From Guillardia theta CCMP2712 (lineage: Eukaryota > Protista > Cryptophyta): a DNA stretch of 64,000 bases. Location: contig NW_005434617.1 of the NCBI RefSeq assembly GCF_000315625.1, positions 280,632 through 344,631 of the forward strand, written 5' to 3'. This document shows, in pieces, positions 23,430 to 60,852 of this stretch. A program made the position numbers and the translations under genes. Numbering within the stretch: position 1 is the stretch's first letter; every line of letters starts with the position of its first letter. The notes below the pieces were generated by a model. That model saw only the letters and a program-made list of their open reading frames with translations, did not search any database and was not told the DNA's origin.

Positions 23430-23680
23430 AACTCCCGGCGTCGCCGGCGTCGGACTGCTGGGCCGCGACTGCACGGTGCCGGGCCCGGGTCGCGGCCCGG
23501 ACCCGGAACTTCGGAACGGTCCGACGGCTTGACTCTCAGTGCGGCCGTACGGTCACACGCCGGGCCCGGGGCCCGGGGTCTGACGGTAACCGGGTGAGGG
23601 CCCAGGCCGACCGTCACTGTAGCCGGAGGCTCACTGCCCTCAGAACTCACGGTTTACGGGTAGTACGGTTCAAGGGCCGG
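23430..23680. other. GC-rich intergenic island 3
   Basis: GGGCCCGGG, CCGTACGG, GTCACTG and TGACTCTCAGTG words. Confidence 0.75.
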
Positions 23681-24616: not shown

Positions 24617-25005
24617 TGATGCGGGTATAGTCCAGCAACTGAGCGATAGTGCACTTAGGAGTAGAACAGATGAACAATGAAGCTAGATTTGTTTATGTAC
24701 AGCAGTAAGAGAACACACGTCAATGTTCGTGCAATCCCATTCCGATGACGTGGCCAACGTCTAAGATGGGTTGCTTATATGTCGAGGTCAGGCTTAACCC
24801 GTAATACAGCAATGAGTAAACATGTGTATCGGTTTATACCAGCCTCATGCTTTCATCATACCAATGTGTTGTACGTACGTCTACGTCCAGTACACATCTT
24901 CGATTCTAGCATTATACACCTCGCCAGCGTACGTAGCCTCTTGCGACTACTCGCATGATGCTGCCATGTCCGTTACTGACGTAACGTCATGCGGGTGCAA
25001 CATCA
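24617..25005 (-). repeat. 3' LTR
   Basis: Matches 32396-32784 with no difference seen by eye; preceded on the minus strand by the PPT (25006-25018). Confidence 0.95.
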
Positions 25006-25873
25006 CTCCCCCTTGCTCGAAACTCAGTGTCGTCACTGCGTGAGAGCATTGATTTATGCAACACCGGGACCGACCCAACGATTCTGGTGCTGTATGAGGG
25101 TCTCCCTTTGTCTCTTCGCGAACTAACCAACAAAATGCGAAAATGGCAGAAAGCCAAAATGCAAATGTGGCCCAGGACGGTGAGTTCCCAGTACGTTTCA
25201 GCAAATGACATAGGTTCCAAAGTCATACATGCATTCATATGCCTTTCAGTGAGCATAACACGTCGTTTCCACATGCTTTTACGTTTCCTTCGTAGCATTT
25301 TGTGGATGCACGTGAGGAATTGCGTGTAGCATTTTTGAGGTAACGAGACGTTGGATTGCCTTTCACACACTGCTGATTGTGTGGGGTAAGCAATTCCAAA
25401 CCCTGATGTAGCTTTTCGCATCATCAACTAGCTTCAATGGAAGTTTAGAGCAGCTATGCAGCATTTTGCTACACGCCGGTTACCCACGTAGTGAGTTAAC
25501 GAAGAGTACGTTTCCATGTTTCAAAAGAAATCATGTTACGCGCCATCGCCCTGATTAGCAATCATGTTTCCATGTCACCATATCAGCCCATGCACTATGG
25601 GGAAGCTGTGCTATGAAACTCTTACTCCTTTCTCCCATGTCCATTTGCGTTTGCAAGCAACTATCACTACCCACTGAAGTCGCAATGCCCCAGGGATGCT
25701 CAAGTTGTGCCACATGCTTATGGTTTCGCTTGTACTATGCTACTCCCTGGTACTAGAACAGTCCAGAGGCGCTCAGCACTTCGCGTATGTGTCTTTGTCC
25801 TTCGAAGGATCTTAGACAAGTTTGAGAAAAGTTTATTCATTTTGAAAATTACCAAAGGTAATCATCGTATGAA

Positions 25874-26955
25874 TTACTTTTTTGTTTTCCTTTGATAGCG
25901 TATTGCTTCAGGGAGGTTCAACAATTGGTCTCTTAGATAGAGAAACTGATCAGCGGGCAGCGGTTTTGTGAATATATCAGCAACTTGCTCGCTTGTATGA
26001 ATTGCTTCCAAGGTAATCTCCTTGTTGGCAACGCATTGTCGTATGAAATGGTGTCTTCTCTTGATGTGTTTCGATCTGCTCTTGCTGACGGGATTCTCGC
26101 TGAGCTTGATGCAGGCGGCGTTGTCTTGATAGCATATCGTCGTAGGTTGCTTGTATCCCATGAACTCGAGCGTCTCTCGTAAGTACAAAATCTCGATAGC
26201 TGTAAGCGTGCTTTGGATGTATTCGCTTTCCATGGTAGACAGTGAGACAGTGTTGTGTCTTGCTGATTTCCATGAGATTGGTGTCCCATTGAGGAAAATG
26301 ACGTATCCACCGGTTGATCTGCTTGTGAGCTTGCAATCGGCGTCTGAGCTATCGCAGAATGCGACTAGTTCCATTTTCTTGTGTCCGTTGTCATCGTTGT
26401 CGGTGTATCTGATTCCTAGTGTCTTGGTGTTCTTGAGATAAGCGTATACTCTGTGCACTGCCATTAACAGTTTCTTCGTAGGACTTGTGAGATATCTTGA
26501 TAGCAATGATACTGCATAGCTGATTTCTGGTCTTGACCATGTTGCTATGTATATCAGACTTGCTACTTGGCTTCTGTAGATTTTGACTAAGTCTTCAGGC
26601 GCGTGCGGATCAACGTCTTCTGGTTCGATCACGAACTTGGGATCCATTGGCGTGGTGAATTTCCCTGTAGGGTCGATCCCCTCAAGGTTAAATCTTTTCA
26701 AACATTTTTCGATGTACGCTTGCTGGTTGCTGATGAAGTCTCCAGCTTCGTCCCTCTTGTACGCGACTCCCAGATAGAAGCTAAGATCGTTGTCAGTTGT
26801 TACGCTGTATCCTTTTGTGTTCATCATGAAGTCGTCGAACTTTGCAAATAGTGCTTGGCTGTTGCTAGCTTGGATGATGTCGTCGACTACTAATGCGATG
26901 ATGATCTCTCCCCCTTGCTCGTCATGATATAGAAACAAACAATCATCTGACGTGC
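25874..26955 (-). CDS. Copia pol, reverse transcriptase C-terminal part and RNase H (5' part lies in the N gap)
   Basis: DDCLF, LVVDDII, YLGV, YRSQVASLIY..SRPEISYAVSLLSRY, AFCDS, SLSTMESEY, YQDNAAC, SKHIKRRHHFIR, QVADIFTKPL. Confidence 0.93.
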
Positions 26956-27782
26956 NNNNNNNNNNNNNNNNNNNNNNNNNNNNNNNNNNNNNNNNNNNNN
27001 NNNNNNNNNNNNNNNNNNNNNNNNNNNNNNNNNNNNNNNNNNNNNNNNNNNNNNNNNNNNNNNNNNNNNNNNNNNNNNNNNNNNNNNNNNNNNNNNNNNN
27101 NNNNNNNNNNNNNNNNNNNNNNNNNNNNNNNNNNNNNNNNNNNNNNNNNNNNNNNNNNNNNNNNNNNNNNNNNNNNNNNNNNNNNNNNNNNNNNNNNNNN
27201 NNNNNNNNNNNNNNNNNNNNNNNNNNNNNNNNNNNNNNNNNNNNNNNNNNNNNNNNNNNNNNNNNNNNNNNNNNNNNNNNNNNNNNNNNNNNNNNNNNNN
27301 NNNNNNNNNNNNNNNNNNNNNNNNNNNNNNNNNNNNNNNNNNNNNNNNNNNNNNNNNNNNNNNNNNNNNNNNNNNNNNNNNNNNNNNNNNNNNNNNNNNN
27401 NNNNNNNNNNNNNNNNNNNNNNNNNNNNNNNNNNNNNNNNNNNNNNNNNNNNNNNNNNNNNNNNNNNNNNNNNNNNNNNNNNNNNNNNNNNNNNNNNNNN
27501 NNNNNNNNNNNNNNNNNNNNNNNNNNNNNNNNNNNNNNNNNNNNNNNNNNNNNNNNNNNNNNNNNNNNNNNNNNNNNNNNNNNNNNNNNNNNNNNNNNNN
27601 NNNNNNNNNNNNNNNNNNNNNNNNNNNNNNNNNNNNNNNNNNNNNNNNNNNNNNNNNNNNNNNNNNNNNNNNNNNNNNNNNNNNNNNNNNNNNNNNNNNN
27701 NNNNNNNNNNNNNNNNNNNNNNNNNNNNNNNNNNNNNNNNNNNNNNNNNNNNNNNNNNNNNNNNNNNNNNNNNNNNTTCGTT

Positions 27783-29400
27783 CTACCCTGACCAGCTGGC
27801 GGGTCGAACCTCCTCATTGTCAAACGCGATATGGCTGGTTGCCGACAACATGCCTGTGTAGAATAGTTGAGCTTTTTGTATCCTTGATTCTCTTCTTTCA
27901 TCTTTCTTGCATCCTTGAAGAAAAGACATCAAGCTGTCGATTTCTTCGTTGTAATGATTTTCGTTGTACATGTTTCGTTGTGGTGGCCCGTGTGACCATG
28001 TCATGATTTTCTCTTCCAGGTTATTGTATGTGTCGACAAGTACTCCACAGTATTGTCGCTTCGTTAAGGTGCGATCTTGATAAGGGATGCCAAGGTTCGT
28101 AAGGAACTCTAGTGTGCTTCCTGATGGAAGTAGTGTCGCATTGATGAAGTCTTGATTGTCGAACTCTTCAATTCCTGTTGGAAGATCATTGTCTTCGTGG
28201 TCTGAATCACTTGTCGGTGTGTCCACATTCGTCTTCTGTACAATTCGTCCTGACCTCAGTTGATGTTCAGGTATTTGGGTGAGTTTATCCCACTCAAAAT
28301 CCTTTTCACCACTGTTGTAGGTTTCGACTTGAAGACTGGCTAGTTCACGGTTCATGTGCCCTCTTTCTGATAGTCCTGGATCCACCGCTACTTGTTCGTC
28401 TTGTGTGATATCACTCTCTCTTACAACTGATGTCTCAGAACAGGTTCTCGTGAGATGGTTGTCAACTTCAACAGCTTGTTGCCTCACTTGGATCACCATG
28501 GGATCATTGTGTGCTATGCCATGTTGTTGATCTGCAAACGGTCGTCGATTTCTCTCTTCAGGTTGGGCGCTGGAGTTTCCACCGGCATCTTCAGATTCTG
28601 AATCTGATGCGTCTGATGTATCTGACATTTCGATCAATCGTTCACCGGCTCTTTTGAGCACAATGACGTTGTCGTCGCCAAAATCATCAGTTCCGCCGTA
28701 TGGTATTTTCCAAGATCTGTCCTCCGGGTGAGAAAATCTGTAGGGGAATACTTCTTCGTTGAAACTTATATTGTTCTGTGTGACGTACAGTTGTTTCCCA
28801 TTCAGTGCTGCTGCCAAATAACCTTTCATTCCTAGGTGGTGGGCGAAGCCAAGAAACACGCAAACTTCTGCTGTTGGCTCGAGTTTTTTGTCTTTCTTTT
28901 GATCTAATCTTCTGTCCTTTAGGATATGAACGTAGCAGAGGCAACCGAATGGATGGAAGTGTTCTGCGTTTGGTGATGTACCTGTAAACGCTTGGTAGCA
29001 ACTGATGTTTGAGTTTCTGCTGGTAGGAAGGAATGCATTCTCGATCTCTGCGTTGTAATATATAGCGCTGAGCCAGAGATTTTTCGGAACGTTTGAGTGT
29101 ACGATTGCCAATCTAGTCCTTGTATCTAACGAGTAGATTCCAGATTCAGCTCTTCCATTTTGCCAATGTTCATATGGTGCGCTTCTTTCTAGGTGGATGT
29201 TGTGCTTCTCGTACATCTTCAGTGATTTCTTTGAAACCATTTCGCTCCCATTGTCAACTCGAATCACTTTGGGGTAGACCCCATTGTTGAATCTCGTGAC
29301 AACAAGTCGTAACGATTTCCTGTAACCTTTCTTGCTCGCTAAACCTACAGGCATCTTGAATCCTGAGAAGTCGTCTTTCCAGAGTTGGAGGTACCGTTTG
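27783..29400 (-). CDS. Copia integrase core and linker (second frame after a frameshift)
   Basis: RYLQLWKDDFSG, IRVDNGSE, SAPYEHWQNGRAE, HPFGCLCY, KLEPTAEVCVFLGF. Confidence 0.9.
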
Positions 29401-32365
29401 CTCCTTCGATCGAGCGGACTCGATAGGAGCTCATATCCCCATGCAGCCTGTGAAATCTGACATCGGATCTTTTGTGTCTGAATTTTGGTAATGGAGCTGC
29501 CTTGGTTTTCGCTCTGCGGCATGTGTGACATGTCGGCAGGGGTGTTTTTGGATTGATTCTCTTCAATTCCTCCATGCCTTCGATGTTTTCTGCCAGTTGG
29601 AAAAGGTATTTCTTGCCGATGTGGTTGGTTCTTACGTGCCACTTGAGCAGAATCGCTGATGCTCTTGTTCCTTTGATGCGTTCTCCCGTTGAATATAGGT
29701 AAATATTCTTGAGATCTGATTTGTCATTCTTCAATTGTTCTTCGTATTCCTTGTCGTTTTCGTCAAGTTCTTCGATCGTTGTGTTTGTAAAGTCGTCAAA
29801 ATCTGTAAATGATCTTGGATCGTTGAGATACTCCTTGGTTTGCTGTTGAATCTCTTCCGTCGTGAATTGTCTTGCAGATTCTAATGGAGTGTTGTCAGTA
29901 GTCATCAGCTCGTCATCGGAGCTGCTGCAACTGTCCAAGGTCTCTCCATTTTCACTGTCTGACTCTTCTGACGTGTCTAATTCAGGTCGTACATCTCGCA
30001 TGCTGATAGGAAAGGTCTTCATGTGCGTGGGCTTGAAAGCTGTTGCCGAAGTTGTGCTCTCCCCCTGCATCGCAGCTTGGTAGATGTGGATGCTTCCCCC
30101 CCAACGAGGTACGCTCTCCAGTCTTGCGCCGTGGATGATCAGGTGGATTCTGCGTTTTGATGTACTTTGTGTATTTGTCGTTTGTGTTGACTCCTTGATT
30201 GTTGCCGTGAGTGGTATTTCGCCTTCTTGAATTTCTCTGAGAATTGTGTCTTTATCCCAGATGGTTTTTGCTGATAGCTTGGAGATTATCTTATTTGTCT
30301 TCCTGTTGGGTCTTTGGATTTCGACGTACCATAGGTAGGTGCTTGGGCAGAAGTAGAAAGGTATAAATTCATTGTTGAGTGTAATGATTCCGTGTAGTCC
30401 TCCTTCTGGTTTACCTTTGTGGATTATTGTGTGTCCACTATTTGTAATTCGCCAGATGGATAACAGGTTGATTTTAGCATTTTCGTCGCTGATTACTGTT
30501 GCTATAGTTGCAAATGCAAAACGTTTTCCTTCGATTGATGCTATCGTTCCTGCTAGAATTCCTCCGAGCGATGTATTGATCTTGCTGCCCCCCACGCCGG
30601 TGATCTCAGTTTTGTGTGTAAACGATCTCTGTAACCAACTTGGATTGCAGAGTACGCTTACCGTTGCACCTGAGTCGACAATAGCGTACAGGGACTCTTG
30701 TTGTTCTTTCGCTTTTAACGCGTGTAGGAAAACTTGATACCGATCAGTGTTCCTGATCAGTAGTCTGGGTATATGAAAGATGTATTCAAGGTACCATGGT
30801 TTTGAAACTTTTGAGAACAGAGCTGCATCAAGCTTGTGCAGTTGGATCTCGTCAGTTTTCGACCTGGTATCACTTTGATATACAACATAATTTTTAGAAC
30901 AGGGATACTCCTTGGGAGATTTATTCTTTCTAGAACTGCGTCCTAGTGTGCCTCGGAACGTCTCTTTTACGACTTCTTTCAGTCGTTTCGGAGGTGTTCG
31001 AGATGAGGACGGTTCATCGGATTCGTCTTCATCACTGCTAGGTGATTCTTGAACGGATTCTTGGGTTTCGGTTTGGTCGGTAGAGGTGGCTTCTTGCAGT
31101 GCTTTTGTGAGGTTCACGAGGACCTTCTTGTCGATGCTGACTGTTTGCTTGTATTTTGACTTCGGGTATTGTCCGCTCTCCTCGTTTGAACGGTTTGGGT
31201 TCGACGAGCGATGACTCTTGGCGGTAAATTTTGCGGATCTTCCTGCCCTTGTCTGAAAACCGGTTGAAATGCTTCCTGTGATCCTCTTCATGGTTGGCGC
31301 TGTTTTATTGCCAGTGGCTCTTTCTCCGATCCTAGATGCGTCATGCTCGTTGGTAGCGTGACTGAGAGAAATCCTTGCTGGAAGTCGTTTTTCTTTGCAG
31401 ATTTTGCATCCAGTAAAGTTTTCTTGTTGTTGTCTCCTGATTTTCTGTGGTGTATTGTTTTGTTTGACGGAGGCTGAAAACACGGCGTTCGCCTTTCGTT
31501 TTTGACCTGAATGATGTGCTTCTGTTGATTTCTTGCCAGAGCTTTCTTGTCCTGCTTGAAGGATAGGTATTGGGTGTTTCGTGCCTCTGGTAGTGAAGTT
31601 CATCATATGTTGATGGAATTTCAAAAAATCTTCTATCTGGGGTTCTCCCTCGTAGAAGAAGTTTTCTTCCGTTGCGTTGCGATGGATTTGAGATGTTATC
31701 CAACTGCCTAGTTCTGCTTGAACGCCCGTTTCGTCGATTGCTCTGAGGTTGTCGATAACGTCTTTGAAAGCACGGGTGTAGATGAAAGTGCAGTCTTTGC
31801 CTTGTGAAGCAAATTTCTTCAAGGTCCTAACCACATTGGGGATGTAGTCTCCGTTGTAGATTACTGCTTGCTCTAGTTCTTTGAGATTGGCAAGGGTCTG
31901 TTCAGCTTTTGTTGCTTCGGTTGGCTTGTCTAGTCTTTTAAAGTCTGTCCATGCCTTGATCCCAGCTAAGCAAAGCTTTGTAGGCGTCTCGGGGGATTTG
32001 TGTTCTTCTTCCATGTGGGCTTTCAGAATCTGAATCCTGCCAGGGCATTGCATGTAAACAGTGTGGAGGATTTGCGTCAAAGCAGCATCTGCTTCTCGTA
32101 CAAATTCTCTCCTTTTCTGTCTCATGTTTTCCTGTAATTCTTCTGATTGAGTATCTCTGATGGGAAAATGACAGTCGAAGTAGGCTCTCATGTTTTCTGG
32201 ATTCCCTTCAGAGTTGAGGTATGCATAGTATTGCCCTATCAACTCGAACTGTATAAAGTTCTCGATATCTGGGGCAAGTCTTTGCATATTCTCGGGTGTT
32301 ACTGCTGTAATCATCGAGTCCTGAGGCTGATTGATTGGCGGCCATTGTAGACGGTATGGCGACAT
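29345..32365 (-). CDS. Copia gag-protease-integrase N-terminus
   Basis: 1006-aa ORF; protease IVDSGAT and NLLSI; HHCC zinc domain WHVRTNH...CHTC; LHGD first catalytic Asp. Confidence 0.9.
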   Translation of the reverse strand: MSPYRLQWPPINQPQDSMITAVTPENMQRLAPDIENFIQFELIGQYYAYLNSEGNPENMRAYFDCHFPIRDTQSEELQENMRQKRREFVREADAALTQILHTVYMQCPGRIQILKAHMEEEHKSPETPTKLCLAGIKAWTDFKRLDKPTEATKAEQTLANLKELEQAVIYNGDYIPNVVRTLKKFASQGKDCTFIYTRAFKDVIDNLRAIDETGVQAELGSWITSQIHRNATEENFFYEGEPQIEDFLKFHQHMMNFTTRGTKHPIPILQAGQESSGKKSTEAHHSGQKRKANAVFSASVKQNNTPQKIRRQQQENFTGCKICKEKRLPARISLSHATNEHDASRIGERATGNKTAPTMKRITGSISTGFQTRAGRSAKFTAKSHRSSNPNRSNEESGQYPKSKYKQTVSIDKKVLVNLTKALQEATSTDQTETQESVQESPSSDEDESDEPSSSRTPPKRLKEVVKETFRGTLGRSSRKNKSPKEYPCSKNYVVYQSDTRSKTDEIQLHKLDAALFSKVSKPWYLEYIFHIPRLLIRNTDRYQVFLHALKAKEQQESLYAIVDSGATVSVLCNPSWLQRSFTHKTEITGVGGSKINTSLGGILAGTIASIEGKRFAFATIATVISDENAKINLLSIWRITNSGHTIIHKGKPEGGLHGIITLNNEFIPFYFCPSTYLWYVEIQRPNRKTNKIISKLSAKTIWDKDTILREIQEGEIPLTATIKESTQTTNTQSTSKRRIHLIIHGARLESVPRWGGSIHIYQAAMQGESTTSATAFKPTHMKTFPISMRDVRPELDTSEESDSENGETLDSCSSSDDELMTTDNTPLESARQFTTEEIQQQTKEYLNDPRSFTDFDDFTNTTIEELDENDKEYEEQLKNDKSDLKNIYLYSTGERIKGTRASAILLKWHVRTNHIGKKYLFQLAENIEGMEELKRINPKTPLPTCHTCRRAKTKAAPLPKFRHKRSDVRFHRLHGDMSSYRVRSIEGANGTSNSGKTTSQDSRCL

Positions 32366-32395
32366 CTGTTCCTTTAACGCGAGGCTTTTATAACC

Positions 32396-32784
32396 TGATG
32401 CGGGTATAGTCCAGCAACTGAGCGATAGTGCACTTAGGAGTAGAACAGATGAACAATGAAGCTAGATTTGTTTATGTACAGCAGTAAGAGAACACACGTC
32501 AATGTTCGTGCAATCCCATTCCGATGACGTGGCCAACGTCTAAGATGGGTTGCTTATATGTCGAGGTCAGGCTTAACCCGTAATACAGCAATGAGTAAAC
32601 ATGTGTATCGGTTTATACCAGCCTCATGCTTTCATCATACCAATGTGTTGTACGTACGTCTACGTCCAGTACACATCTTCGATTCTAGCATTATACACCT
32701 CGCCAGCGTACGTAGCCTCTTGCGACTACTCGCATGATGCTGCCATGTCCGTTACTGACGTAACGTCATGCGGGTGCAACATCA
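32396..32784 (-). repeat. 5' LTR
   Basis: Direct repeat of 24617-25005; followed on the minus strand by a GGTTAT-type primer-binding site and the gag ATG. Confidence 0.95.
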
Positions 32785-32919
32785 CCTTGGGCGTAGCGTA
32801 GGAAAATAGGATGACCGACGATCATCGGATGCAGATCCCTGCAGTGGTGCTGCTGATCTGATGAGAGTGTGTGCTTAATAAACAGTGATCCTAAGATCAT
32901 CTGAGCTCAAGGTCTTACA

Positions 32920-33160
32920 GCGGTCCGACTCCGCCAGGGGCGGCCGCCGGGGGCCGGCCGCAGCCGCGCGGCCGGCCCTCAGCGGCGTTCGAGCCTGGAG
33001 CGGCGGCCTGCGGCCCGGCCAGGCAGGGGCCGTCGCCGTAGGCGGCTTTCCGGGCCACACTACTGGGCCCGGCCGCGCCGCCAGCCTCTGACCGTACGGT
33101 CCGTCCGACTCCTGCGGGAAGCCGGGCGGACCGTCGGAATCGCAGGCGGCGCGGCAGTAG
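32920..33160. other. GC-rich intergenic island 4
   Basis: GGCCGGCC, CCGTACGG and CCGACTCC words; followed by a ~1.8-kb GGGGT-rich tract. Confidence 0.75.
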
Positions 33161-35400
33161 TAACGTAATCCAGGGCGAGTCTCTCCCTATTGATCACCTA
33201 TGCGAGTTGGTACGACTCAAAGTTAAATCTGCAGTGGTAGGTGCGTAGGAAATCAATGAGTTGAGCGATTTCCTAAAGTTGATATCTGGCAGATAACGTA
33301 CCAAAGTGTCAACACGGTGTCAAACTGCTCTTCTAGTACGGGTACTTCTGAGCTTCGAAGTGCATGTGTTCATGAGGTGGGGTCATTAAACCGGGGCAAA
33401 CCACCTACCCCTACTCATCCGTGTGACCTCAATCCGTATCAGGGGAATGCAAAGTAGTAAAGCGGGGTCGGAAGAGTGGGTAGGGTGGTGCCGGAATCGG
33501 CGGTGTCAAATGAGGACCAGGGTTATGATCCTCCAGGGGGTGGGTGTACGGAGTTTTGTCACAGCGGGGATGAGGGTACAGATCAAAGATGAACGGCGAG
33601 GCAATCGGTGGGGTGGACAGTTGCTCGGTTGAAGGGTAGGAGGGTGCCAAGATTTGAAGGGGAGGAACAAGAGAAACAGTGTACATGGAGTGGGGTGGTG
33701 GAACATTCCAGCGTGCCGTTTGGTCATTGCAGGGATGCCCAAGAGCTCGGAACGTGACAAGTGAATGGGCTGGAAACAAGCAGCTTTTGGCGAGGAGTCG
33801 TATGGTTGTTTTGTCCTTGTGGTATGGGTGGGGTGGTCCGAGAGGAGCAGGTGTAGTAGCAAAGTGGTGCCCGTGTGCATGGGAGGGGGGCGATCTCAGT
33901 ACAAGATATATGTGGGGGCCGACTGGATGGTAGTAGGGTATGGAAACCACAAGTGTACCAGGAATGGGGGGTAGGGGTTCACTGGAGTTGATGAAATTGG
34001 GAAGGTGGTGGGGTTAAGGCTAGTACAGAAAATGTGTGACCTGTGATGAAGAGATCAGTTGTATAATACATTTATAAAGTGTACACTTTACTACGAAGAT
34101 TACCCACCCCACCTCCGACCCTCCTTCATTGATCGATCTGCAGATACCTCTTGGGCTAGGTACTAATCTGCAGTTGAGCGCTGCTCACCTCGGCTTCCGC
34201 TACCGAACTGAAAGGTTTAGTCAAACTCTGTTGTGTAATATTTTTGTACAAAAATGTGCACAAAAGTTGAGCAAGTTAAATTTCCTAGGACCCTCTGATG
34301 GTGGGGAACAAGGGGGTGGTGCCTGTACTGGCACGGAACAATTATTTGACCCCCCCGTGGCTGGTGTCAGTACCCCATTTGGTGGTGCTATATGATAGGG
34401 TCTCTCGACTGGTTGACATGACTCGACATTTATGTAATCAAGGGGGTGATATGACACAGCAGAGGACGAAGGAGTAGGGGCGGGTGGGGGGAGGGGTGGG
34501 GTCAGGGTGGGGGTGGCATGTGGAGGGGGTGCTCAACTGTTTGGATGTTAACTGGCACGACTACCGTCATGTCATACCAACGTTGGGGGAGTGGGGGTCA
34601 GGAGATCTCCGGAAACAGGTTAACATCCTGTGAGAGAGCCCGCTTTGAAGTGTTTGGGGTGGGGGTGTGAGGAGAAAATTCCGGGGGTGGGGTTGGAGTC
34701 GCAATCGGGGACGATATTGTGAAAGTGGATCGCAGGAGGGTGGGTTGAACGACTATAACGATTTTAATATTTTTTTTGTAAGGTTCATTTTAACAGAAAT
34801 TTGGTGGGTGGGTAGGTCGCGAGGATTACCTCGGTGGTCGGATGGGAGAGGTGGGGAGAGGTGGGGTGGGTACTGGTACAGAGATGGCTTCGGTAGCAAG
34901 ATTGGTATTCCGGGAGGGAGGGTCACTACCCCACGGCTTTGCTTTGTTAAAATGTACCGGTTGTGAGAGGGTGAGGTGGTACCAGACAGGTTGTGTTCCA
35001 GGAGGGGTGGTTGGACAAATGACCAAGAGATTGGAAGGGGGTGAGGGTTTGTGAAAGTGAAGATCTGCTGTATATGAGGGGGTATACGAAAGTAAAATTG
35101 GGGGTACACCAAGGTTTTAATCATGAGGGGTGGGTAGGGGGTGGGTGGGGCAAAGGTTGCATATCAACAAACATTCCTCCTCGGGGAACTTTCAAGAGGA
35201 AGGCTCGGATATCCTGCTCACCTGTCGTGTACCTCTCCTACCTCTCTCCTCCTTTCAGCGCTCTTCTGTACATCCCGCTTCCTCTACCTACAACCTTGCT
35301 CTACAAGCTCGCTTCTCCAACCTCCCTTTGTTTCCTTATTCTTGTACTTTAACACACCGCGATCAAGCAGAAGCCACTTGAAAAAAAGATCCACGACGAA

Positions 35401-43200: not shown

Positions 43201-45218
43201 ACGACGGGAACGAAATCATGCAGATCTCGGACGAGGAGAAGCAGAACATCAGCGAGGAGGCGAAGGAGGCGGCGAGGAAGATGGGGCAGGAGGAGCTGCA
43301 GAAGACGCTGAAGCAGATCGGGATGAGCGAATTCGAATCGGCAGCCTACGACAAGTTCCTCCAGCCGGTGGAGCATGACATCCGCCACATGCGCCTCCTC
43401 CTCGAGCGCGTGGAGGCTCGTCAGAAGGAGCGGGAGTGGCTGAAGCTGCAGCCCTTTGGCGAGCTCGACGACTCCCGGCTCATCGACGGAGTGGTAGGGG
43501 AGAGGCTGGTTTACCGGAGGAGGGGGGACAAGGCCCCCGAGCCCGGCTCCCCCCAGAAGCTCCCGAAGCGCTTCATGTTCGTGCTCGACGTAAGCGCGAG
43601 CATGTACAGGTTCAACTCCTGGGACCGCCGGCTCGAGCGCTGCTGCCAGATGGTGACGATGCTGATGGAGGCCCTGCACGGCTTCCAGCACAAGATCAGC
43701 TGGAGTGTAGTCGGTCACTCGGGGGACGGGCCCGACCACCGGCTGATCGAGTTTGACGAGCCTCCCACGGACAAGGCGCAACGGCTGAGGATCGTCCAGA
43801 CCATGTGGGCCCACGCGCAGTACTGCTACACGGGGGATCACACGCTTGCAGCGACTCAGATGGCAATGGAGGAGGTGAAGGAGCAGGGGAGGGGGGTGGG
43901 GGGGAGGGGCTGGAGGGGCAACGAAAGAGATAGAGAAAGCCAAGGTGGAAGGGGAGGAGGAGAAGGAGGAGGAAGAGGAGGAGGAGCATTTGGAGGTCAT
44001 GGTGGTGCAGGAGGAGGAGGAGGAGAAGGAGGAGGAAGAGGAGGAGGAGGAGGAGGAGGAGGAGGAGGAGGAGGAAGATCATGTTTTCGTGACTTGGTTC
44101 GNNNNNNNNNNNNNNNNNNNNNNNNNNNNNNNNNNNNNNNNNNNNNNNNNNNNNNNNNNNNNNNNNNNNNNNNNNNNNNNNNNNNNNNNNNNNNNNNNNN
44201 NNNNNNNNNNNNNNNNNNNNNNNNNNNNNNNNNNNNNNNNNNNNNNNNNNNNNNNNNNNNNNNNNNNNNNNNNNNNNNNNNNNNNNNNNNNNNNNNNNNN
44301 NNNNNNNNNNNNNNNNNNNNNNNNNNNNNNNNNNNNNNNNNNNNNNNNNNNNNNNNNNNNNNNNNNNNNNNNNNNNNNNNNNNNNNNNNNNNNNNNNNNN
44401 NNNNNNNNNNNNNNNNNNNNNNNNNNNNNNNNNNNNNNNNNNNNNNNNNNNNNNNNNNNNNNNNNNNNNNNNNNNNNNNNNNNNNNNNNNNNNNNNNNNN
44501 NNNNNNNNNNNNNNNNNNNNNNNNNNNNNNNNNNNNNNNNNNNNNNNNNNNNNNNNNNNNNNNNNNNNNNNNNNNNNNNNNNNNNNNNNNNNNNNNNNNN
44601 NNNNNNNNNNNNNNNNNNNNNNNNNNNNNNNNNNNNNNNNNNNNNNNNNNNNNNNNNNNNNNNNNNNNNNNNNNNNNNNNNNNNNNNNNNNNNNNNNNNN
44701 NNNNNNNNNNNNNNNNNNNNNNNNNNNNNNNNNNNNNNNNNNNNNNNNNNNNNNNNNNNNNNNNNNNNNNNNNNNNNNNNNNNNNNNNNNNNNNNNNNNN
44801 NNNNNNNNNNNNNNNNNNNNNNNNNNNNNNNNNNNNNNNNNNNNNNNNNNNNNNNNNNNNNNNNNNNNNNNNNNNNNNNNNNNNNNNNNNNNNNNNNNNN
44901 NNNNNNNNNNNNNNNNNNNNNNNNNNGTGCCTTCGGTCCACGTCCTCCACGTCCCCCTCCCTCCTCCTCCTCCTCCTCCTCCTCCTCCTCCTCCTCCTCC
45001 TCCTCCTCCTTCTCCTCAGGTGGGGATGAAGCTCTTCGCATTGCCGAGGCGCTTCCTTTCGGACGAGGTCACGTGTGTACAGACACAGCAGAGCTCCCAG
45101 GTATCCTCGCTCGTCGCGTCCTCGTCCTCTCCACTGACCGTCACCCGGCATCGTTCCGCCCCTGCCAGGAGTGCTCAAGGAGATTTTCACCTCCGTCTCT
45201 GTGAAGAAATCTGACTGA
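37421..45218 (+). CDS. VWA8: VWA8 (KIAA0564) AAA+ ATPase with C-terminal vWA domain, multi-exon; apparent 1-nt frameshift at ~39951 and an N gap
   Basis: LRWMLQKFQLGQDMFLIG, TRDTTESDLK, LDGIERAERNVLPTLNNLLENREM, GEKGTGKS, DEADKAP, YPYSTRE, GGNTWAGGTGGRDTAGLGGKGGPYRLD, DVSASMYRFN; Arg-rich N-terminus compatible with mitochondrial targeting. Confidence 0.93.
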
Positions 45219-45299
45219 GGGTACTGTCAAGAGTACGTTAGCTATCGAGGACTGAGTTGAGGTCGAACTTGAAACGAATCATGGCGTTTGGAGGAGCCG

Positions 45300-45510
45300 A
45301 ATCACACGGTAAAACCCGAGCGGTCGGCGATCCCCTAGTCGGACTTCGTTGCGCCTGAGCCGCCAGCCGATCGGACTGTACTGAGTCCGGGGAGTCACTA
45401 GCGCTCAGTCACTAGTAGGTCTGAGTCTCCCTCAGCCGCAGCGCCGGGCCGCCGCAGCGCCGGGCCGCTGTCCGGCCCGGCGGGAAGTAGTAGGTGAGCA
45501 CGGTAACTGA
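45300..45510. other. GC-rich intergenic island 5, upstream of RWP-RK copy 1
   Basis: ACTGAGTCCGG, GAGTCACT, CTCAGTCACT and a 16-nt tandem duplication CCGCAGCGCCGGGCCG. Confidence 0.7.
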
Positions 45511-45529
45511 CTCCCATGCTACGCCGCTT

Positions 45530-45775
45530 GCTTCGGGGCAAGCGGGTTAAAATTTGCATATGCTAGGTATGCAAATGTGTAGTAAAGCCACAACTTGATA
45601 TAGGGCTGACCTACCCTTGATCTAGAAAAACCCTAAAACCTTTATTGACTGAAAAAGAAACGCAAACCGGAGCAAACATTTAAACAAAGGAGGAGGAGGA
45701 TAAAGCCTACAAAACCTACCCGAATTGTTTAGCTGAAAATCTTTTCCCTTCTCCAAATTTTAATTGCCCCGCAGC
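45530..45775. mobile_element. Possible MITE-like element with imperfect terminal inverted repeats
   Basis: Left end GCTTCGGGGCAA[GCGGG]TTAAAATTTG; right end CAAATTTTAATTGCCCCGCAGC; AT-rich interior; no clear target duplication. Confidence 0.35.
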
Positions 45776-45999
45776 TTCGCTCGGAGGCTCGAGACTGCAA
45801 CATGATACCACCCACCCACCCCATCAGTTCCCACTGGTCACTGCGGATAAAAGATCAAGGGGGGCGGGGGGGGGTTAGTACGGTGGGGGGTGGGGGTATG
45901 ATCAATGTATCACAGGGAAGGCAGCAGGGCAGGGATAAGGAGGGGTGGTTAGGCGCAGAATTTGCGAACTCTTCATTGCCTAGCACATCAGCCCTCCCC

Positions 46000-46473
46000 A
46001 TGGCCTCCCCGCCCCCATCCCGCTGTCCCTCTCCTCCTCAGCCCAGCACCAAGGTCTTCCTCTTCCCCCGAAGCAAGTCTGGCCGCAAGCTCCTCCCTCA
46101 CAAGGGAAGGAGACCCCAGGCCTTCGACCTCCCTGCCCTCCAGAGTCACTTCCACCTCCCCCTCCTCCAGGCCAGCGCCGCCCTTGGCATCTCCGTCACG
46201 GCCCTCAAGAAGCTCAGCCGCAGGCTGGGCATCCAGCGGTGGCCGTATGAGAGGAGGGACAAGCCTCGACGTAGTCCCTCGAGTAGGCGAGGCAGGAAAC
46301 AGCAGCGCTCCTCCCCTTCTGTCGCTCGAGGAGGCAGGAGTGCCGCTGTCGAGGGAAGAGGAGCCGGAGGAGGAGGAAGAGAGGTTGGCTGGGAGCCCAT
46401 CAGCCGGGCATGGATCGAGTGGTACCTAGGCTGCGAGGACGGCATCGAGGAGAGGAATATCACAGGAGTGTAA
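46000..46473 (+). CDS. RWP-RK domain transcription factor, copy 1 (157 aa)
   Basis: LQSHFHLPLLQASAALGISVTALKKLSRRLGIQRWPY; ATG position conserved in all three copies. Confidence 0.85.
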   Translation: MASPPPSRCPSPPQPSTKVFLFPRSKSGRKLLPHKGRRPQAFDLPALQSHFHLPLLQASAALGISVTALKKLSRRLGIQRWPYERRDKPRRSPSSRRGRKQQRSSPSVARGGRSAAVEGRGAGGGGREVGWEPISRAWIEWYLGCEDGIEERNITGV

Positions 46474-47004
46474 TGTGAGGGGGGATGGCAGAGGAGTCTT
46501 TAGATGGTCACATAGGGAATACTTCAGTGTGTCTGCTATCCTGATCGTACCCTGACGTGTTTTGAGGAGTTATAATGAAATGCAAACGTAATCCTTCATC
46601 TATTTTTCTTCAGCACATTGACATGTACATACACTGATTGCACGCGGCCGCGCAGGCGCGCAAGTAGGTAAGGGAGAGATGTGAGGCCGGTGTGTGGGAA
46701 GCCGCCTGAGAGGAGGAGGAGGAGGGTTGGGATCCGAGAGCAGCCTTCAGAAGTCAGCCGGTCAACGGCTGTTCTGACTCCGATGCCATCCGATTCTTCC
46801 GAGGCTCCGAGGGACCGCCGGCAACAAGATCTCAAGGACAAGCGCACTGACAACGTTCAGTGTGAAAGTTGCACTGCCAACGGTTGGCGTGACTGCAGGC
46901 GGGAGAGGAGAGTACTAGGGAAGGAAGAGGCATGCCACGTAGAAGAAGCAATGATGCGCGAATCATGGAGTATGGGACAGCACTGTCTTTACTCAAAGTT
47001 AAGC

Positions 47005-47520
47005 CCTGTCAGTCGGACGGTCGGGACAGTCCGGCGCCCCGTACGGTCACTGTCATACCGTACGAGTCACTGAGTGGTGGCCGGTCCCGTGCCCTACCTT
47101 ACGGTACGGTAGTTCAACTCCGAGTGTTGCCAGGCTGAGCCGGGCAGCGAACTGAGTTGAACTTGGACCGGCCGCCCGATCGGACTCCGGCGCCGCGGTT
47201 ACGGGTGGGCCCGCCGGCCGGGCGCCGGGGCGCCGCGGGCTCCACCGGGCCCGGGGTGTAGTCGTCTACTGAAGGTTAAGTTAAAAAGCAGTACGAGGAC
47301 CGACAATCAGGAGTCACCATTTACTCAAAGTGAAGTTAAAATCAGTACGAGGACAATCAGGAGAGTCGAGGAGGCTTGACCCTGACAGGAGAGTCTTCTT
47401 TACTCAAAGTTAAGTTAAAAATCAGTACGAGTCATGTCCGATCCGATCTCCTCGAATCCCGGCCGTGTGGGACTCAGTGACTCGTGATCGGAGTCCGGGA
47501 ATCGGCGTAGCCCCGGTACT
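47005..47520. other. GC-rich island 6 plus locally reiterated TTTACTCAAAGTTAAGTTAAA..CAGTACGAG unit, upstream of RWP-RK copy 2
   Basis: Collinear but indel-riddled paralogue of 49170-49720. Confidence 0.8.
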
Positions 47521-47701
47521 AGGACCTCTAAGGCGGATCAGAAGAGCAAATGGGGGGTAGGGGTGGATCAAAGCGCATACTAGCCTCAATAGCTCTTTTA
47601 AAAGGTTAACTTGACTACCCCTACTCTGCCCTACCGCCTCCCTGTAGACTGATACGTGCTTGCGACACCTTCCCCCTTGCCCAGCTCACCAGCCCTCCCC
47701 C

Positions 47702-48175
47702 ATGGCCTCCCCGCCCCCATCCCGCTGTCCCCCTCCTCCTCAGCCCAGCACCAAGGTCTTCCTCTTCCCCCGAAGCAAGTCTGGCCGCAAGCTCCTCCCT
47801 CACAAGGGAAGGAGACCCCAGGCCTTCGACCTCCCTGCCCTCCAGAGTCACTTCCACCTCCCCCTCCTCCAGGCCAGCGCCGCCCTTGGCATCTCCGTCA
47901 CGGCCCTCAAGAAGCTCAGCCGCAGGCTGGGCATCCAGCGGTGGCCGTATGAGAGGAGGGACAAGCCTCGACGTAGTCCCTCGAGTAGGCGAGGCAGGAA
48001 ACAGCAGCGCTCCTCCCCTTCTGTCGCTCGAGGAGGCAGGAGTGCCGCTGTCGAGGGAAGAGAAGCCGGAGGAGGAGGAAGAGAGGTTGGCTGGGAGCCC
48101 ATCAGCCGGGCATGGATCGAGTGGTACCTGGGCTGCGAGGACGGCATCGAGGAGAGGAATATCACAGGAGTGTAA
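47702..48175 (+). CDS. RWP-RK domain transcription factor, copy 2 (157 aa)
   Basis: Differs from copy 1 by only a few substitutions. Confidence 0.85.
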   Translation: MASPPPSRCPPPPQPSTKVFLFPRSKSGRKLLPHKGRRPQAFDLPALQSHFHLPLLQASAALGISVTALKKLSRRLGIQRWPYERRDKPRRSPSSRRGRKQQRSSPSVARGGRSAAVEGREAGGGGREVGWEPISRAWIEWYLGCEDGIEERNITGV

Positions 48176-49169
48176 TGTGAGGGGGGGTGGCAGATGAGGA
48201 GTCTTTAGATGGTCACATAGGGAATACTTCAGTGTGTCTGCTATCCTGATCGTACCCTGACGTGTTTTGATTAGTTATAATGAAATGCAAACGTAATCCT
48301 TCATCTGTTTTTCTGCAGCTATCAGAGCTCATAGGATAGCGAGCCCAACACAGGAGTGGTCAACACTCGAAATGTGGACAGCACACAAGGATAGCCTCTA
48401 CAACTATCCAGACGAAAGACAGTGATTCTCTAACGGCTACTTTGGTTCAGAAGTCGGACCCCTCCGGGACGGCTTCCCTATCAAGCACCGGTGGAGCTCT
48501 CCTTTCTGGTAGAAACAAGAACAGGAGCAGCGCATGGACCAAAGGGGCCATAGCGACGGCACGAGGCAGGAAGACTCGTGCAAGCGAGGACCACTACCCC
48601 TGGGACTTCCACAGGGCTATAAAAGGATCAAGATCTTCATCTCTAGGTGGTCTGTCTTCCCTCCCTCTGTGTACCACGCATTTCCCTGTGTTGGTGTGGT
48701 TGCTGCAATAAAGCTTGATAATACTGTCTAGCACCTTCTGTGTGATCCAGCGGAGGTTCATTGAGCATTCGCTTGGCTTGTGTACAACCCGTAAAGCTTC
48801 GGGGTGTAACAGCAGCACATTGACATGTACATACATTGATTGCATGCGGCCGCGCAGGCGCGCAAGTAGGTAAGGGAGAGATGTGAGGCCGGTGTGTGGG
48901 AAGCCGCCTGAGAGGAGGAGGAGGAGGGTGGGGATCCGAGAGCAGCCTTCAGAAGTCAGCCGGTCAACGGCTGTTCTGACTCCGATGCCATCCGATTCTT
49001 CCGAGGCTCCGGAGGGACCGCCGGCAACAAGATCTCAAGGACAAGCGCACTGACAACGTTCAGTGTGAAAGTTGCACTGCCAACGGTTGACTGCAGGCGG
49101 GAGAGGAGAGTACTAGGGAAGGAAGAGGCATGGTAGAAGAAGCATGAGACGAACTTCCGAATCATGGAG

Positions 49170-49540
49170 TACTACGGTATGAGACACTGTCCGATCAGTC
49201 CGATCCGCCGGAGAGTCCTGGACTGACTCACGGTCCGGCGCCCCGTCGGGCCGCCGCAGTGCTTCGGTGGCAGGCTTCAAGTCACCCGGCGACTCGCCAT
49301 CAGTGCTTCCTCAGGCTCAGGTCTGGGCCGCGGCTGAGCGGAGCCTGGCTAGCCGGATACGAGTGGTGCCCGGCCCGGCCCCGTGCCCTACACGGTACCG
49401 TGCCAGGGTAGCGTTCAACGGTTGCGCCGCAGGAGGCTGAGCCGGGCAGCGAAGTTGACTGAAGGGCCGGGATCGGACTCCGGCGGTGGCTCCACGGTGT
49501 CACAGTGTAGGCCCATGTCTCCTCGGATCCCGGCGACCGG
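49170..49540. other. GC-rich island 7, upstream of RWP-RK copy 3
   Basis: Same vocabulary; paralogous to island 6. Confidence 0.8.
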
Positions 49541-49836
49541 ATGCTTTTTTTTTTAATTGTTATTATTATTATTATTATTATTAGATGCTCAGTATCCAAT
49601 GCTTTACTCAAAGTTAAGTTAAAGATCAGTACGAGGACAATCACGAGAGTCGAGGAGGCTTGATGCTTTTAACAATAATATACGTCGGAATCGGCGTAGC
49701 CTCGGTACTAGGACCTCTAAGGAAGAGCTCTTAAGGTTGACACGGACTACCCCTACTCTGCCCTACCGCCTCCCTGTGTTACTATGTTATCCTAGACTGA
49801 TACCGTTCCCCCTTGCCCAGCTCACCAGCCCTCCCC

Positions 49837-50319
49837 ATGGCCTCCCCGCCCCCATCCCGCTGTCCCCCTCCTCCTCAGCCCAGCACCAAGGTCTTCCTCT
49901 TCCCCCGAAGCAAGTCTGGCCGCAAGCTCCTCCCTCACAAGGGAAGGAGACCCCAGGCCTTCGACCTCCCTGCCCTCCAGCGTCACTTCCACCTCCCCCT
50001 CCTCCAGGCCAGCGCCGCCCTTGGCATCTCCGTCACGGCCCTCAAGAAGCTCAGCCGCAGGCTGGGCATCCAGCGGTGGCCGTATGAGAGGAGGGACAAG
50101 CCTCGACGTAGTCCCTCGAGTAGGCGAGGCAGGAAACAGCAGCGCTCCTCCCCTTCTGTCGCTCGAGGAGGCAGGAGTGCCGCTGTCGAGGGAAGAGAAG
50201 CCGGAGGAGGAGGAAGAGAGGTTGGCTGGGAGCCCATCAGCCGGGCATGGATCGAGTGGTACCTGGGCTGCGAGGACGACATCGAGGAGAGGGATTGCGG
50301 GAAGGAACTCTTATGTTGA
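49837..50319 (+). CDS. RWP-RK domain transcription factor, copy 3 (160 aa, different C-terminus)
   Basis: Near-identical to copies 1 and 2 until ...IEER, then DCGKELLC*. Confidence 0.85.
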   Translation: MASPPPSRCPPPPQPSTKVFLFPRSKSGRKLLPHKGRRPQAFDLPALQRHFHLPLLQASAALGISVTALKKLSRRLGIQRWPYERRDKPRRSPSSRRGRKQQRSSPSVARGGRSAAVEGREAGGGGREVGWEPISRAWIEWYLGCEDDIEERDCGKELLC

Positions 50320-50644
50320 GCATGTTTCACATGCGTGGACAGCAAGAGCAGCTATGAAAGACATCGATTCTCCTGTACTGGTAAGATTGGCAATACTCGA
50401 GGAAAAGTCAACGCACGAGGGAGGTTGGTTGTTTGCCTGGCCTATAGAAGAATCTGAGGCAACTCCTTGAGTTGGTATGTGCCACAAAGCTGTTTTATGT
50501 TTATGATGCTTCTCGAATAAACTTCATATTGCTTCATATTGACTACTCTTCACCATTGTGTCACAGTGTAATCCGGCTGAGGTGCTTTGAGCACTCGTAA
50601 AGCTTCGGGGTGCGACACAATCAACGGAAGTGTTTCTTCAGCAC

Positions 50645-51240
50645 AGCCTCCGTGACGATCATGTGACAGCACTCAGTGACTCCCGTGGATCATCCGGCCG
50701 GACTCCGGGATCACATCCGCGCAAGCGCACGGGGACTGAATGAGCCTCTGGCAGCCTCCGAGGCTCCGAGAGGCCCGGCAGGCTCAAGTGCCAGGCTCAG
50801 CTCGGGGGATGCCAGTGACGGCTCGGACCGTCGGGGCCCGGGCCGTCGCCGTCACTTGAATGCCAGTGAGCCCCTGGCGCCGGCCCGGGCCCGCCGTGAG
50901 GGCCCGCCGGGCGCCCGTCCGGAAACCGTCCGGTATTCCCGGAGTTCAACGCCCGGCCGCCCGGAACTTCCGAAGTTGGTGGGCCGCCGGGCCCCGCCGG
51001 CCCGGGGGAGCCCGGGCCTTGAGATCACGGTTGACTCACTGTTCACCCGTCTTTTCTGATCACTGTCACTGTCAGTTTCCGGGCCGCGACGGTGCCAACT
51101 GCAAGCCCAGTTGCTTGCCAGTGACTGCGAAACTCGGAAGCCGCGCCACGAAGGTCCCGGGCCGGGGCCGACTCGGCCTCCGGTACGCCGGATTCAATCA
51201 GTCACTGAGTGATTTCAAGTGACATTACCCGCACAGCCTG
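50645..51240. other. GC-rich intergenic island 8
   Basis: ACTCAGTGACTC, GGGCCCGG and GTCACTGAGT words; retains relic anchors of the spacer at 46610-46900. Confidence 0.8.
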
Positions 51241-52242
51241 CCGCACCGAAGGGCTCGCCGCGTCAAAGATGAGGCTGAGAAGTTCGACGCCGCGATAGAT
51301 TTCGGCAACCTGAGCACCGAGGACGAATCCGACAAGAATTGAGCGATTCTCTAATCGATTCAGTCAATAAAGGTCCAAACGGTTTGAATGATTGTCCGCC
51401 ATATGTTTCTCATTACTATGATGTATTCTAGTGACGAGGTGATATCGTGTAGATGGGGTATGATATCCTCTAAAAGCCTATCTAGAAACATGCGCTGAAG
51501 GCGGGTGAGGGTGGCATCGTTCCCGAGGGGCATAAGGATGTTGGCCGCCCGGCGGCGTTTTATCTGCCTGTGTGTCAAGGGACTCGGACCCGGAGTCGGA
51601 CCACGGTACGCGAGGCCCTCCTCGTTCGTGAGCCAGGAGGATGTCCAGCTGCTGGTTATCCTTGCCGATCATGCTGATCACCTCCCACCTCAGCCTGTCC
51701 GTCCGCTCCAGATAATCCAACCCGTCCGAGTCGAGCCGCCTGAGTCAGTGAGGTTGAGGGCGATGATTCTTTTTTCCTGCTGCCTGAAAGGGAGGGGTGT
51801 GAAGTAGGGGGAATATGGCGGTGGTCAGGGGGTGGTACGGTCTTAGTTCTTGGGCGGGAAACCATCAAAAGTTTGTGGCCGTAATGCTGGGGCGATCTGA
51901 GGGCATCGATGAAGAATAGGCAGAGCGAGTAGAAGGCGACAGGATGCAGCAAGGGAAGGGCGGGCAAGCGGCATAAGAGGGGATAGGGATTTGTGTATAG
52001 TCTGTCCAGTCTTGATTCCTTCTGTCATAATCCTAAATGTTTGTGACATTGCTGTCTGTATCCAGCTTTGAATGTGTGATGCATTTCTGAAGAAGTTTCT
52101 GGATTGATATCGATTTTGTTCATTCGAAATCGAGCTCGAAGTGCTGTAATCATGAGCATTGAAAAAGATGTGTCTGTTATGATCTGACCTGGGAAACTAG
52201 GAAAACTCATTACGAGGAACCATCTACCAAATCGAAAAGACA

Positions 52243-60250: not shown

Positions 60251-60852
60251 GCAGCAGTGCGGTCTGGATCTTCGATACCCCTACCTCATAGTGTTGATTT
60301 GGGGGTCCTAGTTATGTTGAGGGTAGTTTTTTTTGAAACTTTGATCAACATATTGACCCCAGTACCCACCAGCCCAAACTACCACCGGTCATTTACTGAG
60401 CATTGGAAGGTCACAATAACGGGGTACTAAAGAGAATGAGTGGTACCACTACCCCGTAGGAGATCCTGATGAAGTTGCTCAATGGTGGCATATGGAGGAA
60501 ATCTAGCCAGTGGACGGCGCTGTGGAAGTAGAGGAGAAGAGGAGGAAGATGAGAGGAGGAAGATGAGAGGAGGAAGATGAGAGGAGGAAGATATGGTGAA
60601 GAAGAACCTTCAGAGAGGCAGTAAGGCAAGATGAGTGCGTGAGAAGATGAATCAAAAGTTTGATGCAGGAAAATACGATCAGTGCAACTGACACTAAAGT
60701 CCTCCGCAAGTTGTTTGGAGCCTTCTCCCAATCCTTATAATATCAATCATTCTTCCTTCGGCTAACTTGTTTGTGAGATTGTAGATGCATCTTCCTCTGT
60801 CGTAATTCCACAGCTCCATCTTCAATTTTGAAATTCGAACTTGAATGGGGGC

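Follow-up and report, generated by a model that had tools for sequence, protein, structure and literature searches.

Two homologous GC-rich islands in a tandem gene array of Guillardia theta CCMP2712 have come to differ by many short insertions and deletions (indels) and by insertions of an element resembling a long interspersed nuclear element (LINE), while the DNA that flanks them has stayed near-identical. The array lies in a stretch of 64,000 nucleotides (the window) of contig NW_005434617.1, positions 280,632 to 344,631, which is part of contig 57 of the 87.1-Mb, 669-contig eukaryotic assembly that served for the genome searches; the nuclear genome of this species was reported as haploid and 87.2 Mb in size (PMC4007541). 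A small open reading frame (ORF) occurs there in three tandem copies, with coding blocks at 45976–46475, 47677–48175 and 49813–50319. Units 1 and 2 additionally share a 3' region and spacer (46476–46960 and 48176–49159), and from the spacer up to the next coding block runs a variable zone of 700–800 bp that contains the islands, here called islands 1 and 2. The pattern is real and well supported statistically, and it is best explained by known mutational processes acting at unusual intensity on a genome-wide class of palindrome-dense GC islands, together with targeted insertion of a retroelement. Our best reading, held with moderate confidence, is that the island DNA is intrinsically unstable and turns over through short templated insertions and deletions and through targeted LINE insertion.

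Homology and divergence of the two islands

An earlier note on this DNA, made from the sequence alone, had described the flanks of the repeated units as near-identical, and this was borne out: the coding block and 3' spacer of the two tandem units are 98–99% identical. The short anchors that it had picked out within the islands are all present, in order and where it had placed them (for example 47029/49233 and 47132/49434). When exact matches of at least 6 nt were chained, the best collinear chain between 46961–47262 and 49160–49530 comprised 128 nt in 13 anchors, whereas 300 dinucleotide shuffles gave 49.7 ± 8.2 with a maximum of 72, so that the anchors are more collinear than those of any shuffled sequence; with words of at least 8 nt the chain was 89 against 15 ± 7.5. 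Chain scores against ten unrelated GC islands of the same window, taken on both strands, were 52–98. Because the real chain lies above both the shuffles and the unrelated islands, islands 1 and 2 are truly homologous, and the word sharing of the unrelated islands, itself above chance, points to a common vocabulary. The islands upstream of unit 1 and downstream of unit 3 were rejected as further homologues of islands 1 and 2, their chain scores being no better than those of unrelated islands.

Among the anchors, the 20-nt one at 47132/49434 is genome-unique to this locus, while the 15-nt anchor GATCGGACTCCGGCG has ten exact occurrences in the genome and, with one mismatch allowed, 64 versus 14. 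Genome DNA searches with either island returned the island itself and one 65-nt match only; the same kind of search found no other copies of the spacer, which is confined to this locus. Exact-pattern scans of Joint Genome Institute (JGI) metagenome contigs with one spacer pattern and one coding-block pattern gave no match.

A global alignment of unit 1 against unit 2 was used to compare divergence by region. The coding block shows 1.2% substitutions and 0.2 gap events per 100 bp (the coding parts of the two units are three substitutions apart), and the spacer at 46476–46885 shows 2.0% and 0.98. Gap events then rise to 4.0 per 100 bp at the spacer edge (46886–46960) and to 6.95 in the GC island, where 18% of aligned columns are mismatched, and they stand at 4.0 in the AT-rich, repeat-containing part (47263–47587) and at 4.5 in the final 90 bp before the next gene. 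The claim that indel density rises as the island is approached is thus correct, but the density remains high up to the next coding block and the zone is not limited to the GC core. With the LINE pieces removed, the variable zone contains 36 gap events of 1–74 nt in ~612 bp, against 4 in 410 bp of the adjacent non-coding spacer, a rate six times as high (p = 3e-5). The clean ungapped blocks of the variable zone show 4 differences in 155 nt (2.6%), near the 2.0% of the spacer, with block identities of 95–100%. The locus is a tandem array of three copies of a small gene, and the duplication is probably recent, with ~1–2% of positions substituted in coding block and non-coding spacer alike; the simplest account is that the whole unit is of one age.

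The features of the array and its surroundings are as follows.

45274–45552, unstranded: GC island upstream of unit 1, of the same vocabulary; chain scores of 52–84 against islands 1 and 2, and a perfect 16-nt tandem duplication inside.
45976–46475, plus strand: unit 1, short upstream stretch and coding block (ORF with RWPY motif); 97.7% identity to 47677–48319 and 98.1% to 49813–50295.
46476–46960, plus strand: unit 1, 3' region and spacer, the near-identical non-coding flank serving as control; compared with unit 2, it has a substitution level of 2.0% and a gap-event rate of 0.98 per 100 bp.
46961–47261, unstranded: core of GC island 1; GC 0.66, CpG observed/expected 1.1, 13 collinear anchors with island 2.
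46988–47010, minus strand: LINE-like 3' end of 16 nt with 2 extra nt and the second CTGTC copy of a 5-bp target-site duplication; exact matches of 18–19 nt to many element copies.
47262–47431, minus strand: three truncated LINE-like 3' ends (47265–47300, 47320–47387 and 47399–47431) splitting island 1; 86–100% matches to element copies.
47432–47497, unstranded: tail of GC island 1, homologous to 49513–49545 of island 2 in the alignment with the LINE cluster taken out.
47613–47645, plus strand: conserved 33-nt element of TACCCC type, 55–90 bp upstream of the unit 2 coding block; 33/33 identical to 49745–49777.
47677–48319, plus strand: unit 2, coding block and beginning of the 3' region, from the sequence comparison of the units.
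48320–48812, unstranded: 493-bp insertion specific to unit 2, a dispersed repeat of ~13 copies with GCAGC on both flanks; absent in unit 1, depth 881 versus ~66.
48813–49159, plus strand: unit 2 spacer; 94% identity (gaps counted) to 46611–46972.
49160–49548, unstranded: GC island 2; GC 0.67, anchors shared with island 1.
49549–49670, minus strand: 122-nt retro-insertion specific to unit 2, composed of a T run, (ATT)n, a unique part of ~20 nt and 62 nt of LINE-like 3' end (LINE match 49601–49663); flanking 8-bp duplication ATGCTTTT.
49813–50319, plus strand: unit 3 coding block; homology stops at ~50295.
50640–51333, unstranded: GC island downstream of unit 3; a metagenome contig (X6, see below) has a 10-nt insertion after 50797.

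The insertion at 48320–48812, on which RNA reads were found, is probably a solo long terminal repeat (LTR) or another small dispersed repeat, and its final 25 nt are similar to 50593–50617, downstream of unit 3. An assembly gap at 44102–44926 (within 43990–45020) has (GGA)n on its left and (CCT)n on its right; since these are complementary microsatellites in inverted orientation, a long fold-back may have broken the assembly at this point.

A LINE-like element inserted in the islands

Some 315 nt of the copy-specific DNA consist of five 5'-truncated 3' ends of a young LINE-like element, all of them unit-specific. The 21-nt word at the end of the element has 1,890 matches in the genome with at most 2 mismatches, against 0 for the reversed control, and the read depth of this word and of the 47262–47431 cluster is ~1,200 times the single-copy level. 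Its inner 3' untranslated region (UTR) has at least 513 candidate copies, and the best 40 of these by score are 96–100% identical. In the 33 copies compared, the end base is the same and the similarity stops inward after 18 to more than 780 nt, that is, the 3' end is constant and the 5' truncation variable; flanking direct duplications of 5–9 bp were found in 7 of these 33 copies and in 1 of 33 controls. On the matching strand of the element there are two ORFs (193 and 184 aa), whose ends lie ~165 nt short of the constant end. In 1.3 kb of element coding sequence, neither a reverse transcriptase nor an endonuclease domain could be recognised, and Pfam, PDB sequences and Atlas gave no family.

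Target-site duplications, CTGTC and ATGCTTTT, accompany two of the five insertions in the window. CTGTC flanks the 46988–47010 piece on both sides, and the unfilled site, with a single CTGTC, is kept in unit 2 at 49187–49191. Likewise, once the LINE cluster at 47262–47431 is removed, the island tail at 47432–47497 aligns with 49513–49545. One of the fragments (47265–47300) is merely 85–91% like other copies. From their 3' end, duplications and ORFs, the TTTACTCAAAG... pieces appear to be 5'-truncated copies of a LINE-type (non-LTR) retroelement, and we call the element LINE-like. A transposon with terminal inverted repeats (TIR), or a miniature inverted-repeat transposable element (MITE), was rejected, since most copies are one-ended, the element exceeds 780 bp and has ORFs, and the duplication length varies; the few inverted copy pairs that exist fit head-to-head insertions. 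Such head-to-head inverted LINE-like 3' ends, 90–190 bp apart and MITE-like in look, were seen at loci L027 (1315–1707), L029 (1410–1543) and L023 (1331–1521), and at L027 the inverted symmetry reaches into the flanks.

Five LINE ends within 1,190 bp compare with 0.026 expected. At 18 independent loci elsewhere in the genome, the flank beyond the constant end reaches a GC content of at least 0.65 at 33% of the loci, a level that 4% of background windows attain (p = 4e-4). The GC-rich outer flanks and the five ends found here together indicate that the element lands preferentially in or beside GC islands. About half of the copies have TC directly ahead of the joined end.

Six reads of RNA run X21 lie on the strand opposite to the LINE-like sense and pass from ...CAGTACGAG through GACA into an A run (47399–47431 and 49603–49639; loci L018–L048). 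As these reads run into the A run, some transcripts may be polyadenylated inside antisense copies of the element 3' end.

Local templating and palindromes

The copy-specific bases of the islands are largely made of words that occur nearby: those belonging to 7-mers with another occurrence, direct or inverted, no more than 100 nt away amount to 66% in island 1 and 50% in island 2, against 23–24% in shuffles. Islands 1 and 2 contain four palindromes with arms of at least 5 nt, and because every one of them is unit-specific, they were made or lost after the duplication. Across the islands of the window, palindromes with such arms and a spacer of 1 number 41, against 9.2 ± 3.5 in dinucleotide shuffles (4.5-fold), and those with a spacer of 0 number 25, against 8.2 (3-fold); outside the islands, 16 kb of the window, coding sequence included, shows no enrichment (ratios of ~1). 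The skew of odd over even palindromes is not significant (41 versus 25, p = 0.08), and C or G centres are mildly above composition (p = 0.014). The islands are also enriched in local direct repeats.

Indels in a second population

A freshwater metagenome (X6) has contigs that closely match the locus. In three islands they differ from the reference by four indels and one substitution, whereas spacer, coding blocks and dispersed repeat together show a single in-frame 3-nt indel alongside 15 substitutions (Fisher p = 0.004). The first of the island indels is a CG added at the exact centre of CGTACG. In the second, 8 nt are absent between two GAGT words, and 7 of them copy a word 20 nt upstream; as unit 2 likewise lacks the 8 nt, the reference allele is the derived one. 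The third is a 5-nt difference between repeated TGA(C) words. The fourth is the 10-nt insertion after 50797, and by it a palindrome that has a central C and 7-bp arms is made complete. Three of the four island indels involve flanking repeats of 3–4 nt or a copy of a neighbouring word. In our judgement, indels of 8–10 nt are unlikely to be read errors.

A genome-wide class of islands

The window contains about eight non-coding islands of 280–850 bp with a GC content of 0.64–0.76 and a CpG observed/expected ratio of 0.94–1.1, against 0.73 for the whole window, a composition like that of CpG islands. They have words in common, yet they do not align to one another. Two island words are over-represented genome-wide, one 12-mer with 75 sites versus 14 and another word with 227, although the reversed control of the latter (95) is nearly the same word and hence a poor control. 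The islands belong to a genome-wide class dense in palindromes and micro-repeats. We found no description of GC-rich palindromic islands in Guillardia or in cryptophytes in a literature search that was incomplete.

Elsewhere in the window, an intronless-looking ORF at 6101–8305 encodes a Polo-like kinase (kinase domain and two POLO boxes); having no GC island within 6 kb upstream, it shows that not every gene has one. A young LTR retrotransposon occupies 24617–32785, with identical 390-bp LTRs at 24617–25006 and 32396–32785. Its ORF contains an integrase core and a retroviral SH3-like domain, and it has a GC island on either side (23375–23641 and 32874–33214).

The triplicated gene and its upstream region

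The triplicated ORF (~160 aa; 45996–46475, 47700–48175 and 49838–50319) carries the motif LGIQRWPYERR. It had been labelled RWP-RK, and an RWPY motif can indeed be made out by eye, but the label found no support in a domain call, as there is no match to Pfam RWP-RK even at E = 10. RNA coverage of the ORF is almost nil. All three coding blocks have a GC island 300–450 bp upstream, and it is plausible that the islands act as promoters; the 6% of RNA run X21 that was sampled contained no reads lying on them. Stretches rich in GGGGTA/TACCCC lie between GC islands and the ORF that follows (47540–47650, 45860–45900, 20990–21030 and 60270–60330), and these words may serve this genome as a motif of the proximal promoter.

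Explanations of island turnover

The reading that we prefer runs as follows. GC island DNA, dense in palindromes and micro-repeats, would be intrinsically unstable, and short pieces would be gained and lost by slippage and by copying of nearby sequence, direct or inverted, the copying taking place either by template switching at replication or by templated repair of breaks. Every event would make new repeats and palindromes, which would feed further events. The islands are also preferred landing sites of the young, high-copy LINE-like element, and at least five of its heavily 5'-truncated 3' ends were inserted into the two units after the duplication. What we infer here is instability, and not selection, behind the pattern, and an enzymology of slippage and template switching or of break repair.

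The earlier note had gone further and proposed a candidate localized DNA-rewriting system, with the islands as scars of repeated break-and-insert events. Its view that they are homologous DNA changed mainly by many short indels, and neither conserved cis-elements nor whole transposon copies, agrees with our results. Nothing points to a dedicated system. The same kind of island is found genome-wide, the zone is wider than the GC core, and ~315 nt of the differences are ordinary retro-insertions of the high-copy LINE-like element.

Several observations weigh against the instability that we favour. At 31 paralogue gap junctions there is no excess of microhomology (mean 0.90, against 0.79 for random placement), which may reflect overlapping events; for the older events, the junctions do not demonstrate simple slippage or microhomology-mediated joining. 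By the aligner's mismatch counts, substitutions in the variable zone are about four times those of the spacer (8% versus 2%), and the ratio of indels to substitutions, 36:34 in the zone and 4:8 in the spacer, does not differ significantly (p = 0.2). The raised substitutions would also fit an older, unconverted segment, with gene conversion of the flanks. The indel excess rests on one paralogous pair of islands, and the X6 evidence on five events in single contigs of depth 3–5, a kind of contig that can be wrong. Finally, replication template switching gives the same sequence outcomes as templated break repair (PMC7954356, PMC11724301).

This last point leads to the alternative that the islands are sites of recurrent breakage, mended by fold-back or templated end joining of the polymerase (Pol) theta type that would write short direct and inverted copies. 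Here breaks, and not replication slippage, would drive the indel excess; they might be promoter-associated breaks of meiotic or topoisomerase origin, or stem from structure-specific nicking of hairpins or from a putative endonuclease of the LINE-like element. We regard this as possible, though we lean against it. The piling up of LINE 3' ends in and beside the islands would be expected from nicking by the element or from capture at existing breaks, the copy-specific DNA is locally templated (50–66% versus 23–24%), and of the polymorphic insertions one repeats the adjoining 7 nt in inverted form and another falls exactly in the middle of a palindrome; in yeast, breaks are documented to acquire short templated insertions in inverted orientation (PMC11724301). 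Family-A polymerase domains were found at five loci, candidates at most for Pol theta, and the junctions of the paralogue gaps lack the microhomology excess. The same outcomes can also arise from template switching at replication (PMC7954356).

The earlier note had proposed a survey of the genome for expansions of PolQ and PolX. Contigs 61, 7, 91, 21, 120 and 27 carry in all the five family-A DNA polymerase loci and one locus with a PolX palm domain, with no sign of an expansion of PolX or PolQ. The untemplated addition of TdT or PolX type that had been suggested did not find support either, given the single PolX locus and inserts largely made of local words. As for footprints of hairpin opening, palindromes of spacer 0 are enriched 3-fold but those of spacer 1 are enriched 4.5-fold, and one polymorphic CG is central in CGTACG. 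In its strongest form, in which the islands (about eight per 64 kb) are broken again and again, perhaps in connection with gene starts or with a LINE-like nuclease, and are mended by fold-back or templated repair, we consider the breakage reading unlikely. If it were true, a genome-wide process would keep writing short palindromes upstream of genes and would erase similarity within ~2% divergence, leaving the motif of the proximal promoter unchanged.

Gene conversion offers another account, raised already in the earlier note, in which the duplication is older than the flanks suggest: conversion would homogenise the coding block and spacer, and the intergenic DNA would escape and show the true divergence. 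Conversion is common in tandem arrays. The sharp change of identity at ~46886–46960 and at the start of the coding block fits this account, as do the mismatches in aligned columns (2% in the spacer, 15–18% in the variable zone, 6.8% over the final 90 bp before the next gene) and the LINE fragment at 47265–47300 with its 85–91% similarity to other copies. On the other side, the clean blocks of the variable zone are 95–100% identical, about like the spacer; the three coding copies fit a simple tree without a mosaic pattern; and the LINE family that supplied the unit-specific pieces is very young, with copies 96–100% alike among the best 40 of at least 513. Conversion also leaves unexplained the island indels of the second population, which come with hardly any substitutions. 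We find this account improbable, though possible; gene conversion of the flanks is not needed.

Lastly, a draft-assembly artefact in repetitive GC-rich DNA, suggested by the nearby gap (44102–44926) and by the repeated nature of the units, has practically no chance of having produced the differences. Contigs of two independent read sets, X1 (2021) and X2 (2011), span 46905–47349 with zero differences; 49103–49630 is covered by X1 contigs and 49103–49366 by X2 contigs, again with zero differences; and the read depth of the islands is at the single-copy level. As two independent read sets give both islands exactly, the island difference stands and an artefact of assembly is excluded.

Significance

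Should the pattern hold across the genome, short templated indels, more than substitutions, would be the main way in which thousands of gene-proximal islands evolve, and these islands would be attracting a young retroelement. This would bear on the turnover of regulatory DNA in this lineage, on how GC-rich palindromic DNA arises in nuclear genomes and, because homologous islands would become unalignable almost at once, on alignment-based comparative genomics of cryptophyte-like genomes. It would also provide a natural setting in which to study template switching or templated break repair. If the pattern is not general, the locus is no more than a recent tandem duplication whose spacer is untidy and struck by transposons.

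Comparison with known systems

The element resembles LINEs (non-LTR elements that move by target-primed reverse transcription) in its constant 3' end, in 5' truncation down to 16 nt, in target-site duplications of variable length, in an ORF upstream of a ~165-nt 3' UTR, in its very high copy number and in its clustered insertions. Unlike LINEs, it usually has no poly(A) tail, it is strongly associated with GC islands, and 1.3 kb of its coding sequence yielded neither a reverse transcriptase nor an endonuclease domain; moreover, LINE insertion explains only ~315 nt of the differences here and not the many small indels.

Instability of the minisatellite type likewise concerns GC-rich non-coding DNA in which short units are gained and lost far faster than substitutions accumulate, and the islands hold perfect 8-nt and 16-nt tandem duplications. 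However, each island is a unique sequence built from shared short words and palindromes, and not an array of one unit. The concerted evolution of tandem arrays also yields near-identical gene blocks with much more variable spacer DNA between them, but no conversion tract or mosaic was found at this locus, and the clean spacer blocks have diverged as much as the conserved flank.

The palindromic GC clusters of yeast and algal organelles are, like the words of the islands, short, GC-rich, palindromic and dispersed in non-coding DNA, and are linked to length variation (PMC4478555 and PMC4524435). The organelle clusters are discrete mobile units with recognisable copies, whereas the islands described here are nuclear, 280–850 bp long and mutually unalignable. 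Finally, short-range template switching and fold-back insertion (PMC7954356, PMC11724301) duplicate adjacent sequence, either directly or inverted, and create or complete small palindromes, as in the islands; the events at this locus differ in that they appear to be concentrated in one class of sequence, at a density sufficient to erase alignability within ~2% substitution divergence.

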